A stretch of DNA of 64,000 nucleotides from Botryllus schlosseri (taxonomy: Eukaryota), in NCBI GenBank assembly GCA_051294905.1, contig CM119384.1, positions 11,284,001 through 11,348,000 of the forward strand. Reading direction: 5' to 3'. Positions within the stretch are counted from its first letter, which is position 1, and each line of letters opens with the position of its first letter. Made by a program: the position numbers and the translations under genes. This document shows positions 32,701-35,700 of the stretch, piece after piece. Below the pieces are notes generated by a model, which worked only from the letters and a program-made list of their open reading frames with translations, was not told where the DNA came from and did no database searches.

Positions 32701-35700
32701 TTCACTGCTTGGCGGACATTTGAACTCGGCGGGGCTTGTCTGTCTGTGACATTAATTGTAAATGTTAATGCGTTTATATTTGCAAAGTGAAAACAATCAG
32801 CACTTTCATTGAGATCCCAGATTTTTGATTGGGCTTCACTCTTTAGCTTTTTGGCCGCTTGTTCAGTACAGAATAGTGTTCCTTCTCAGCCCACATCGTG
32901 CTCGTGATTGTTGGTGGTAATAGATACGTAGTAGAGCCCCACAGCCTCTGAAGGGCTTGTATGAATACAGGGAGCCAGAAGTACATGAATGCCATTTTAA
33001 AGATTGCTGACAAGTAGGAAAAAGCAAAACCACGGCATTCACCTCACAGCCCCGTTATATCAAACAGTTCGTAGCGAAAGGAAGGAAAGGAAAGGAAAGG
33101 ACGTAGTTTATTTTTGTCCTTGATGTTTTTGCGGCATATACACCGACTCATGATACACACACACACGATCTGCGCATATGCATACCATGAGTGCATGATG
33201 TGCATATGCCGCTGGACAAGGAAGTGCAGATATAGCCTTTTACGGCTTTCTAAGTCATGCACCACCCCTCCATGCTATCCCAGTAATGCATGAGCGCCAA
33301 GCAGGGAAGCCATGGATACCAGTGTTACTAATCAGGTCTTTGGTCTGACCCGGCCGGGAATCGAACCCACGACCTACCGATCAAGAAGCCGGACGCTTAA
33401 CCATTGCGCTACCTGTCGGAAATGTAGGCGCTCATGCAGCTGTGATAATTCCGCTTTTCTGTTCTTGACACCTGTTCACTCACTGCCTGATCTCGTGATT
33501 ACGGAAATGCTGGAAGATATTGTAACCGTTATTATCCCGACCAGTCACTCGGTTGTACGGACCACGCGTGAATAATTGACCGAAATTACCCACACTCATC
33601 GCACCTTGCCTTATATATGAATTCCTAATGTTAGGATGATTCTAGTGAAGGCATATCCGACTAACGCTGTACGCGCGGAAGAAAATTTTTGATCTTCGGT
33701 CGCGTGAAGCATGAGCTTGAGCACTCTCTAATCGTTGCGTAAATGAAAAAGAAAACTTTCAATTTTCTTTCAGGATTTCTGGGGGTGCGGCGAGCACCAA
33801 GGATATCCGCGAACATGTTACTACCAACATGAAAAAGAATTTTGCCCGTACTAAATGGAAGGTTGGTAATTTAACTCTGAGTATGGAGCTCGGTTGAGAT
33901 GTGCTGACCCATATTTTAGGTTGAGGTAGAGTCGTATAAATTGAACCCTAATAACAAGCTGACCACTGGGAGCCTTGGGTGTTATAGGGTTGATGCAGTT
34001 TACGCTACCCGTAAAAATGAAGTAGCTTTTTCAAAACTGGAATGTCAATTCTCGGTGGCACAACCAGCAGGGGGTTGTTTAAGAGAGACATGCCATCCTC
34101 TTTGAAATTTGACACATGAAATATGGATAAATATGAAAACGTCGCGGATACAGCAGGACGATTGTTCCCCTTCGCGATTGTGTCCAAGTCCGTTTTAATT
34201 ACCGTACACTCTCGTGCTGTAATCGACGATTACTCGCTGTATCTGGTCGAATTTATGCAGCGTATATGACGGTGAGCATTGAGCACTCGTCGTTTTGCGG
34301 TTTGGCGTACTCTCTAAATTACGATATCTAATTATCCGAACCATGTTTAGCGGGACAGAATATTTCAATCGTGTTTGCAGTTGTAATAATGGGCAATCAA
34401 GCTGTTCGAGGAAAAAGCGCCAGTTGAATCGTGACACCAATTTCGTCTACCTTTGCGTTGTCAATGCCGCTACATGCGTCGTGCGTGTGGTGCATTTTAA
34501 CACCGGCTATTATCGGGCAATGTTACTTGTAAGACTGCAGAGCACGAACAAAAGATTTTAGCATCCCTTGTATTCAGGCTTTCAAAATCGATTTGAAAAA
34601 CCTGTATTTACCGAGCATTCGTAGCAGGACGCCGTTGAGATTCGTCACCGATTTCGGATTCAACGCCGTAACATTAATTATAGCGTGTTATTGATCAAAG
34701 AACGTTTTCGCAGTCCTCGCTAATTCGCGCGCAACCCGTCTGCAATGGCGAAAATTAGGTTGCGAATCTTGCTAGCACGCCCGTTCGTCGCCTGTCAATT
34801 ACAATTTTCAACACAGCTGGTCCTGACACGCGGCGCAGCGACTGGCGTTGCTCTACAAATTTAATAATCACGGAAACGCGCTCTGCTTGAGGTTTTGTCT
34901 AAATCGCGACCTTTTCAACTTGAACTTTCAGTCATCAAAATCAGCCCTGAATGTAGCTACGACTAAACAAAACAAAAAAGTGAAACTAAAAATAATGCGA
35001 AATTTGCCGACAGTCTTTTTTTTAATATCGTACCTCTTGTGCGTAGTTAAGTTTCTACAAGGCAAAGTCCTTTTAAAACCACCAATTCTAATTTGACTTT
35101 GTTGTTTGCTTAGTTTTGTTTCTATATTATTCTGTCGGATTTTGGTATGAAAAAGCCTCCCAGCCTTCACCTATCACCTGCCTTGTACCAGTTGTAGGCA
35201 ACTTTTAATCAGTTCGGTGCAACAGTTGCAGCGTCGCGACGTAACATGAGTCGAAGGTACACCGGGAACTCTATATCACGTCAAAAAGGGTTCTAAAATA
35301 CGTTCTAATTTTCTAAAACTGGTTAAAATTTGCTGTTTCAACTAATGGACAAGCCCCATACGTTTTGAAATTGAGAATACCTTTTAAATATCTTGGGCGG
35401 ACCGACACCGGTACGATTGTCAACTCATAAATATGATGCAAATCTGTTGGAAGACTAGTTTCCGGAACGTAAAAGAAACTTAGTCAGTGGTTTGGATTGA
35501 AATTCTCTGCGCTCAGGCAAAACCGAATTGAGCGCTGGAAACGAGCAGAGTGAACTTTCAGAAGTTTGTGGATATACGATGTTCTTTTCTATACTATACT
35601 AGTTGCTGACGATTACCCCTGACGAGTGTCAGCCGAAAATATTCGGGTTCAATTCAATATCAATATCAATATACTACTAAATTGTATATTGAAGTTCTGT

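Follow-up and report, generated by a model that had tools for sequence, protein, structure and literature searches.

Genomic context of the hammerhead motif

The window analysed here is a 64,000-nt stretch of Botryllus schlosseri contig CM119384.1, and its plus strand carries the exons of a CaMKI-like gene. The last coding exon of this gene (35883..35957, plus strand) encodes 24 residues followed by a stop codon, and the last intron, which precedes it (33862..35882, plus strand), has GT..AG ends. The spliced joint of this intron is present in raw X23 RNA reads and in X1 and X5 contigs; the reads place it at 33859->35881, with the true cut two positions further to the right, and the intron is directly seen to be spliced normally. 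RNA depth is about 17 over the last exon and about 6 over the preceding exon, and the last exon is therefore covered at least equally well. No tRNA genes were detected by ARAGORN in the whole window.

Within the last intron, on the sense strand and 234 nt upstream of the last coding exon, lies an intact hammerhead motif of 44 nt (35605-35648, plus strand). An initial annotation of this DNA had placed the motif in a CaMKI intron, in sense and just before the last coding exon, and this placement holds, with the distance of 234 nt counted from the RNA-defined splice joint.

Structure of the motif

The letters of the motif, all on the plus strand, were read directly. The upstream box GCUGAC (35605-35610), which would form the 5' strand of a pseudoknot with 35628-35633, is followed by G35611, an AUU linker and the 5' strand of stem I, ACCC (35615-35618). 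The core box from C3 to A9 reads CUGACGA (35619-35625). The sole stem II pair is a G:C pair between G10.1 (G35626) and C11.1 (C35634), and the loop that it encloses, UGUCAGC (35627-35633), consists of a variable bridging nucleotide, U35627, and the predicted 3' strand of the pseudoknot, GUCAGC (35628-35633). G12, A13 and A14 are supplied by GAA (35635-35637), and these are followed by the palindrome AAUAUU (35638-35643), which runs from A15.1 to U16.1 and corresponds to a dimer-type stem III. C17 is C35644, and hammerhead numbering predicts cleavage on its 3' side. The 3' strand of stem I, GGGU (35645-35648), completes the motif, and both strands of this stem show compensatory changes among relatives. 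Every position required of a hammerhead core (C3 U4 G5 A6 N7 G8 A9, G12 A13 A14, A15.1-U16.1 and H17) carries a permitted base. The spacing between CUGANGA and GAAA is only 9 nt and holds no hairpin; beyond the 10.1:11.1 pair, helix II extends solely via the upstream box. The structure proposed in the initial annotation, comprising the core, a 4-bp stem I, a one-pair stem II, a palindromic stem III and an upstream complement to loop II, is thus present in each of its named pairings.

The Rfam/Infernal search suggested at the same time was less favorable: no hammerhead model matched at its gathering score in the whole window, nor at E<=10 in the 351 nt from 35450 to 35800. This is expected, because stem II has a single base pair and stem III has no hairpin. 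Weak matches to the CAESAR, mir-246, STnc450 and sR55 models were attributed to chance. Folding of 35600-35655 gives three small hairpins, with an energy not below that of shuffled sequences (z = -0.96). A competing hairpin between CUGAC of the core and GUCAG of loop II has a predicted energy of -4.7 kcal/mol; it was rejected as a conserved decoy structure, as families with a CUGAAGA or CUGAUGA core and a GCCAGU loop are unable to form it. A second CUGACGA upstream (35606-35612) was also rejected as the core, since it would give no 10.1:11.1 pair and the box is not conserved in other families.

Relationship to Penelope-like elements

The motif is a member of an abundant repeat. The 495-Mb genome contains 2,539 exact occurrences of the 44-mer, compared with 0 in the control, and a relaxed form of the motif is present 7,008 times, as against 0 for the reversed control. 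Within the window, the 21-mer spanning the core occurs twice, with 0.01 occurrences expected, which is well beyond chance. A search with the repeat copy of the window returned 1,403 first-look DNA candidates, and the 40 that were scored show 88-92% identity.

The parent of this repeat is evident from its longer copies, in which hammerheads occupy both pseudo-LTRs, an open frame encodes 859 aa of the RT/GIY-YIG type, inverted truncated partners occur and a tail of ~33-37 nt is present. In the long copy L043, a hammerhead is followed by the 859-aa open frame with an RVT_1 domain (E=8e-9) and then by a second hammerhead; a truncated copy in the inverse orientation is also present and has a hammerhead too, and the motifs fall at 3282-3302(-), 598-618(-) and 5303-5323(+). 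A GIY-YIG-like motif in the C-terminal part of the frame scores E=0.03, below the Pfam cut-off. The endonuclease search gave 4,719 first-look candidates with open frames of up to 860 aa, and the protein homologues are of the Penelope-like element (PLE) type, with RVT_1, DUF8422 and HTH_animal domains and, in some, GIY-YIG. Of the features that define a PLE, pseudo-LTRs and a hammerhead inside the pseudo-LTR were found, and the single RT + GIY-YIG ORF is a feature of the family rather than of the window copy. An architecture with hammerheads in the pseudo-LTRs has already been described for PLEs (PMC8557442, PMC4209133), and PLE insertions carry a 30-40-bp tail at one end (PMC8557442). The tie to PLEs suggested in the initial annotation is therefore borne out directly by coding family copies flanked by hammerheads, and the genome-wide count that it had proposed alongside, now at 2,539 exact copies, leads through the long copies to the same family.

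Across the family, the 3' end of insertions is fixed, the 5' truncation point is variable and insertions often have an inverted, truncated partner next to them. In BLASTN, positions 121-266 of the L043 element align to 35566-35717 of the window at 88%, and this 152-bp segment (35566..35717, plus strand) is a 5'-truncated PLE 3' tail in the last intron, in sense to the CaMKI-like gene. Its final part (35685..35717, plus strand) is the "tail" extension typical of PLE insertions, and corresponds to the sequence that long copies have after their upstream pseudo-LTR. A second truncated tail of the same family lies in an earlier intron of the gene (25783..25908, plus strand), also in sense. Its hammerhead (25798-25841) has a CUGAUGA core, a GUUGAC box and the same palindrome as the copy in the last intron, and a G1.1->A change introduces a C:A mismatch in stem I, adjoining the cleavage site. 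The two copies are single and non-tandem, 9.8 kb apart, and both are collinear with the PLE 3' end. A further class of copies in the genome has the 3' part alone in common, from the core onward. Both intronic PLE tails of the CaMKI-like gene are sense-oriented, which, as a small sample (n=2), was counted against the reading of these copies as debris.

Over the 47 nt of its hammerhead segment, the window copy is identical to the modal sequence of the family, whereas about 10% of its flanking positions depart from the family majority, a contrast that could hint at local constraint. However, other copies share at least two of these flank differences, which are subfamily variants, and an exact match to the family hammerhead is what plain copying of the element would leave in the intron. 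A comparison of divergence (0.6% in the hammerhead and 15% in the flank) was rejected as a sign of local constraint, because the set was picked by similarity and an intact core and ran beyond the element ends.

Covariation and the pseudoknot

Alignment A2 comprises 46 sequences of this genome, the rows of which were picked by a pattern that contains the core. Six of the seven core box columns are invariant, with variation at N7, and 10.1:11.1 is G:C in 46/46 rows, although the selecting pattern fixes both the core and the bases of this pair. In nine PLE contigs from other assemblies, 10.1:11.1 is G:C in eight and U:A in one. Overall, 83.4% of the cells in A2 are paired, compared with 16-44% when the partners are slid. 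The inner four pairs of stem I covary directly, with types AU/UA/GC/GU, CG/UG, CG/UA and CG/GC/AU, and the length of this stem in relatives is 4-7 bp. The center of the stem III palindrome covaries between UA and GC from family to family, and the known U3-A8 core covariation is present in L114 and L115.

In the pseudoknot helix, 90.6% of the A2 cells are paired and four of the six pairs change on both sides. A broader set of 13 distinct 6-bp helices between the box and loop II, drawn from five families of this genome and the nine foreign contigs, is paired at 6/6 positions in every case, compared with a mean of 3.5/6 for mismatched partners, and compensatory changes occur at all positions. The loop II pseudoknot that had been predicted in the initial annotation is accordingly upheld, as all 13 helices are fully paired, and to judge from this covariation the pairing between loop II and the upstream box is real and well supported. 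In this PLE lineage, helix II is thus cut to G10.1:C11.1, the remainder is supplied by the 6-bp pairing of the nucleotides after G10.1 with a box 7-10 nt upstream of the core, and the pseudoknot ties together the outer ends of stems I and II.

A more tentative proposal, held with somewhat less than even confidence, is that this PLE lineage builds helix II in an unusual way, from G10.1:C11.1 and a 6-bp pseudoknot whose partner strand is a box 5' of stem I. The lineage in question includes the families of this genome and also relatives that share 40-59% protein identity and come from other assemblies, most of them marine. Its geometry features one variable bridging nucleotide after G10.1, which is U, C, G or A depending on the family, and a linker of 1-4 nt between the outer ends of helices I and II. 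If this is true, PLE hammerheads would gain a brace between stems I and II that reviews deny them. Minimal hammerheads in metazoan PLE pseudo-LTRs were reportedly the subject of work by Lunse, Weinberg and Breaker in 2016. A type I form with a one-pair stem II was not found described for PLEs in the literature compared, outside which that study lies, and the pseudoknot form may already have been published.

Cleavage and the role of the intronic copy

In the parent element, the hammerhead in each pseudo-LTR is presumed from the PLE literature to process element transcripts as a dimer, which may form through the palindromic stem III. As a monomer, the window copy has at most the A15.1:U16.1 pair in stem III; its 6-nt palindrome could pair between two copies, but the AAUAUU self-duplex, with 6 bp that are all A/U, is worth about -0.2 kcal/mol. 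For metazoan PLE hammerheads, published work in vitro describes slow cleavage by dimers and none by monomers (PMC4209133). Efficient cleavage by the window copy as a lone monomer is unlikely.

Read ends do not accumulate at C35644 in the RNA-seq data, which is weak evidence given the library type and the lack of intronic depth. The reads over the motif carry fixed differences at 35652 and 35701 that assign them to other copies. Of 517 X23 reads, 498 lie only partly within the tested stretch. The unique flanks in the intron have zero RNA depth, and cleavage of the window copy is therefore not excluded by these reads. Depth over the motif, which is PLE-derived, is 58-115, compared with 3-17 over the CaMKI exons. 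One X5 contig contains a joint that goes back 50 positions (35649->35600), in a short assembled contig over a high-copy repeat, and no supported circular joint was found in the RNA data.

The motif very probably lies in a dead insertion of a very abundant PLE, truncated from the 5' side to the last 152 bp, and most likely has no selected function in CaMKI. The initial annotation had proposed that self-cleavage may uncouple the last CaMKI exon, an idea that fares poorly against 2,539 identical copies, normal splicing and a well-covered last exon. A ribozyme used by the host, in which a cut after C35644 in the CaMKI pre-mRNA lowers inclusion of the last exon, would fit the intact core and pairings, the position on the sense strand 234 nt before that exon and the identity of the hammerhead segment, but not of its flanks, to the modal sequence. 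This is nevertheless highly improbable, as the same motif recurs 2,539 times in the genome, no monomeric stem III exists and the dimer helix has almost no energy, published relatives behave poorly in vitro (PMC4209133), the spliced joint is present with a last-exon depth (about 17) not under that of the previous exon (about 6), and the site has no flagged read ends. Occasional unselected cleavage, for example if the palindrome paired in trans with abundant PLE RNA or with the other intronic copy, which lies 9.8 kb upstream, would carry no regulatory meaning; PLE RNA covering the motif far exceeds the CaMKI exons (58-115 vs 3-17), and the same primary transcript contains a second sense copy with an identical palindrome. 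Such cleavage is unlikely, given that a 6-bp all-A/U palindrome is nearly without stability, that the upstream copy has a C:A mismatch beside its cleavage site and that the PLE-derived reads have no flagged pile of ends there.

The insertion might instead be a non-autonomous element of the retrozyme type, spreading via small circular RNAs. Animal retrozymes carry type I hammerheads and have a proposed origin in PLE pseudo-LTRs (bioRxiv 10.64898/2026.07.22.740005), and both the 35649->35600 joint and the copy class that begins at the core could be read in this way. However, the window copy is single rather than tandem, is collinear, to either side of the hammerhead, with the untranslated 3' end of coding PLEs and ends in a PLE tail, and the back-joint comes from one short contig over a high-copy repeat, which leaves this origin very improbable. 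Least credible of all is a chance resemblance to the hammerhead consensus in a repeat with no ribozyme fold; the Rfam result and a minimum-free-energy fold that shows other hairpins and is not better than shuffles (z = -0.96) would agree with it, but it is contradicted by compensatory changes across families and assemblies, which affect stem I, the palindrome of stem III and the pseudoknot and include the U3-A8 covariation in L114 and L115, and by a 10.1:11.1 pair with a single exception, U:A.

For the window copy, then, the absence of a selected function in the CaMKI-like gene is most likely, and a regulatory role there is not supported. As transposon debris, the motif is of little importance for the gene, and its annotation as a gene-regulatory ribozyme would mislead.

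Comparison with known hammerheads

The window motif is closest to the PLE pseudo-LTR hammerheads and is not a gene-specific element. Like the minimal hammerheads of metazoan PLEs (Cervera & de la Pena 2014, PMC4209133), it has the type I core order, a stem I of 4-7 bp in the family and its relatives, a preserved G10.1:C11.1 pair with an unpaired nucleotide next to stem II, and a palindromic, dimer-type stem III; it likewise occurs in both pseudo-LTRs of an RT/GIY-YIG element, in thousands of dispersed truncated copies, with the U3-A8 core variant in relatives. Unlike those published motifs, which have a helix II hairpin of 6-8 bp, it has only 9 nt at this position and makes the helix with a box upstream of stem I. 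According to reviews, the published PLE hammerheads have no tertiary contacts between stems I and II (PMC6155905, PMC7761336). The motif shares with the pseudoknot-stabilized hammerheads of Perreault et al. a 5-6-bp Watson-Crick pseudoknot between the outer ends of stems I and II and a stem II that can be reduced to one pair, and in that work fast cleavage at low Mg2+ requires the pseudoknot. The one-pair case published there is a type II hammerhead derived from a metagenome, with a normal stem III, whereas the putative ribozyme described here is of type I (the 5' tail pairing with loop II) with a dimer-type stem III and comes from a eukaryotic retrotransposon.

The amniote hammerheads HH9 (RECK) and HH10 (C10orf118; PMC3088659) are also found on the sense strand in introns of protein-coding genes, and HH10 likewise has a pseudoknot. 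However, these are single-copy, are conserved at orthologous positions and cleave as monomers, unlike the window motif, which is one of 2,539 identical transposon copies and has no stable monomeric stem III. Animal non-LTR retrozymes differ as well, with short tandem units that each contain one hammerhead and with circular RNAs; the window copies are single and have no supported circular joint.

The several families of this PLE together supply about 7,000 copies, to which relatives from other assemblies can be added, and they form a useful natural data set for ribozyme biology. Their covariation shows that a type I minimal hammerhead can swap the stem II hairpin for a pseudoknot formed with the sequence on its own 5' side. 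This pseudoknot class would escape published descriptors and Rfam models in which a hairpin has to stand between CUGANGA and GAAA, and counts of invertebrate PLE hammerheads may therefore be too low. In the SGC, CSG and GCS non-circular permutations (Eckert & Weinberg 2023, PMC10085705), core helices are similarly drawn as pseudoknots, and one side of stem I is joined straight to one side of stem II by a short linker. A block permutation of this kind was rejected as the description of the upstream/loop II helix, as the blocks here stand in the ordinary type I order (CUGANGA, GAAA, cleavage site) and the 5' side of helix II alone is displaced.

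Motif and genomic setting

Read directly, the hammerhead at 35605-35648 (+) consists of an upstream box (GCUGAC), a G and an AUU linker, the 5' strand of stem I (ACCC), CUGACGA, G, UGUCAGC, C, GAA, AAUAUU, C and the 3' strand of stem I (GGGU). In hammerhead numbering, the core CUGACGA represents C3-A9, and it is followed by G10.1:C11.1, G12-A14, A15.1 to U16.1, and C17. Stem I has 4 bp (ACCC:GGGU), and seven loop nucleotides, UGUCAGC, are complementary to the upstream GCUGACG. The core, stems and loop complementarity described in the initial annotation are thus all present where it placed them. 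The Rfam hammerhead model search that it suggested returned no hammerhead match, neither at gathering score in the window nor at E<=10 in a 351-nt stretch, and a plain fold of the motif segment was no better than that of shuffled sequence.

Translated open stretches on the + strand encode consecutive pieces of a CaMKI-type kinase, with one exon piece matching CaMKIV, CaMK1D, CaMK1G and CaMKI structures (E ~1e-17). The last coding exon starts at 35883, and the RNA joint, seen in reads and contigs, runs from 33859 to 35881, with GT..AG ends once the cut is moved 2 to the right; the motif therefore lies in the last intron. Its proposed placement, on the sense strand just before the last coding exon, was borne out, with 234 nt to the exon by the RNA joints.

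Origin in a Penelope-like element

The core 21-mer recurs at 25817-25837 (+) in an earlier intron, and the two window copies align over ~125 bp. A 121-nt query against the 495.5-Mb genome gave 1,403 first-look candidates, of which 40 were scored (88-92% identity). The genome-wide count that had been proposed yielded 2,539 occurrences of the exact 44-mer and 7,008 of the pattern CTGANGAG-N7-CGAAA-N4-TC, versus 0 for the control and the reversed control, respectively.

The repeat copies have a fixed 3' end and variable 5' ends, and in many of them the same sequence also stands inverted immediately upstream, turning at a point that varies. Longer copies extend 5' into the C-terminal end of a frame for a GIY-YIG-like endonuclease; genome-wide, this frame gave 4,719 first-look candidates, many of them paired head to head, with open frames of up to 860 aa. 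In the long copy L043, a locus scan placed hammerheads at 3282-3302 (-) and 598-618 (-) on either side of an 859-aa open frame on the - strand with RVT_1 (E=8e-9), bearing out the suggested association with Penelope-like element (PLE) ORFs; an adjoining inverted, 5'-truncated copy has its own hammerhead at 5303-5323 (+). The terminal 33-37 nt of truncated copies correspond to the bases after the upstream pseudo-LTR of the long copy, and are missing after its downstream pseudo-LTR. In its pseudo-LTRs, inverted partner, truncation, tail and hammerheads, the family agrees with published PLE insertions, which feature pseudo-LTRs with hammerheads, an adjoining inverted truncated copy, frequent 5' truncation and a 30-40-bp tail at one end (PMC8557442, PMC4209133). 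Window positions 35566-35717 match element positions 121-266 of L043 at 88% identity, with this one long copy as the reference and copies described as they stand, without a consensus. The window copy is a dead PLE tail of 152 bp.

In a second class of copies (L088, L089, L095, L096, L105; genome contig G000 C1), the PLE 3' part is common only from ...TGACGAGTGTCAGCC onward, at a site ~60-80 nt before the tail anchor (locus position ~1500), and is preceded by a different common sequence, ...GGTATATCATTGTCCGATTTA. These copies are without C3, the stem I 5' strand and the pseudoknot box, and may represent an element, chimeric or non-autonomous, that borrows the PLE tail.

Conservation of the pseudoknot

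The pairings are kept, in different sequence, by further hammerhead families of this genome. Family A, that of the window, has box GCUGAC, paired strand GUCAGC, stem I ACCC:GGGU and stem III palindrome AAUAUU; all others have the palindrome AAGCUU. Family B shares the box and paired strand of family A, with stem I UCCC:GGGA; family C has ACUGGC/GCCAGU with CACUC:GAGUG or CACUG:CAGUG, and family D ACUGAC/GUCAGU with CGCUC:GAGUG (one G-U). Loci L069 and L070 have UCUGGC/GCCAGA with CACUG:CAGUG, and L078 has ACUGGU/ACCAGU with CGCUC:GAGCG. In an alignment of 46 distinct sequences, picked by a core-containing pattern, the named structure paired 83.4% of cells, versus 16-44% with partners slid by 1-3 columns. 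The box/loop helix was 90.6% paired, with both sides changing in 4/6 pairs and the outermost pair being GC, AU or UA; rows were left out where truncation or rearrangement had replaced the upstream part by unrelated sequence (L005:1245-1291, L047, L055, L056, L058, L059, L063 and L074). Depending on the family, U, C, G or A stands between G10.1 and the paired strand, as would suit an unpaired bridge better than a seventh pair.

Homologues of the 859-aa frame in ENA and Logan assemblies (39-64% identity) are annotated RVT_1 + DUF8422 + HTH_animal, and in each of the nine foreign contigs examined the ORF has a hammerhead of this design next to it. Their box/strand pairs are UCUAGC/GCUAGA, UCUGAC/GUCAGA (two contigs), UCAAGG/CCUUGA, UCCCAU/AUGGGA, UCCAGU/GCUGGA, CUCAGU/ACUGAG, GUCCAU/AUGGAC and UGACGC/GCGUCA. 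Each of the 13 distinct helices is paired at 6/6 positions, with a single G-U in one helix; boxes set against wrong partners gave a mean of 3.5 pairs. Every helix position is occupied by two to four different Watson-Crick pair types, and the spacing is near-constant (box, 7-10 nt including a 4-7-bp stem I strand, core). These compensatory changes across families and assemblies strengthen the predicted loop II pseudoknot, and show that the box/loop pairing is real.

The U3-A8 core covariation found in two of the foreign contigs has already been reported for PLE hammerheads (PMC4209133). In the foreign PLE contigs L114 (~1156, ~3997) and L115 (~1469), UUGAAAA replaces CUGANGA, the U3-A8 covariation described in Cercyon PLEs, and is combined with a pseudoknot-form helix II.

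Proposed fold

We infer that the PLE hammerhead may adopt a stacked-helix fold. The strand after G10.1 would turn back toward C11.1 and pair with the upstream box, so that the box/loop helix and G10.1:C11.1 could stack into a helix II of 7 bp. The six pairs would be spanned across their deep groove by a single nucleotide, which is feasible by H-type pseudoknot geometry, and a short linker would tie the outer ends of the box/loop helix and stem I, keeping stems I and II alongside each other.

All three hammerhead types have established examples of pseudoknots that brace stems I and II; one of these, a type II ribozyme whose stem II is a single pair, requires its 6-bp pseudoknot for fast cleavage (PMC3088659). 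PLE hammerheads are reviewed as minimal motifs without stem I/II tertiary contacts (PMC6155905, PMC7761336). Their helix II was described in 2014 as a 6-8-bp hairpin (PMC4209133), whereas the present family has an upstream-box pseudoknot instead. No description of a pseudoknot form in PLEs was found in the literature searched, which did not extend to Lunse et al. 2016. This family-level pseudoknot design is the sole unusual point.

The intronic copy and CaMKI

The regulatory role proposed for the motif in CaMKI is unsupported. As a monomer, the window copy has no stem III past A15.1:U16.1, and a dimer would need an AAUAUU self-duplex, computed at ~ -0.2 kcal/mol, compared with -4.3 kcal/mol for AAGCUU, the palindrome of other families, and -8.1 kcal/mol for the pseudoknot helix. 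In vitro, published metazoan PLE hammerheads show no activity as monomers and cleave slowly as dimers (PMC4209133). The transcript holds just one further sense copy, in a different intron 9.8 kb upstream, where a C:A mismatch adjoins the cleavage site. The last intron is spliced in the RNA data, and depth in RNA run X23 is not lower over the last exon (~17) than over the preceding one (~6).

Reads over 35518-35719 nearly all have T at 35652 and A at 35701, and therefore come from other copies; in X23, 498/517 reads lie only partly on the stretch. RNA depth is zero over the unique intron sequence flanking the repeat on either side, and no read-end pile-ups were flagged on the stretch, where motif reads come from other copies. 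PLE-family RNA over this hammerhead region reaches a depth of 58-115 in both mate orientations in X21 and X23, with CaMKI exons far below (3-17); since the reads are from other PLE copies, the family is transcribed in these samples. Nothing links the window copy to cleavage, and the locus is a dead copy, of the ordinary kind, of a PLE that is abundant in the genome.

One short assembled contig in RNA run X5 joins 35649 back to 35600, a return of 50 that is away from the predicted cleavage site and might reflect looping of the assembly at a high-copy repeat, or else a PLE junction, inverted or tandem.

Other repeats

Another dispersed repeat of ~200 nt (~95% identity) occurs at ~23140-23360 and ~33090-33300 (+), in two introns of the same gene. 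Its 33-kb copy runs into sequence that looks tRNA-derived by eye; ARAGORN called no tRNA in the window. At 18000-19600 (+), six-frame translation gives the same ~35-57-aa open stretches every few hundred bases, which indicates a tandem or modular repeat block.
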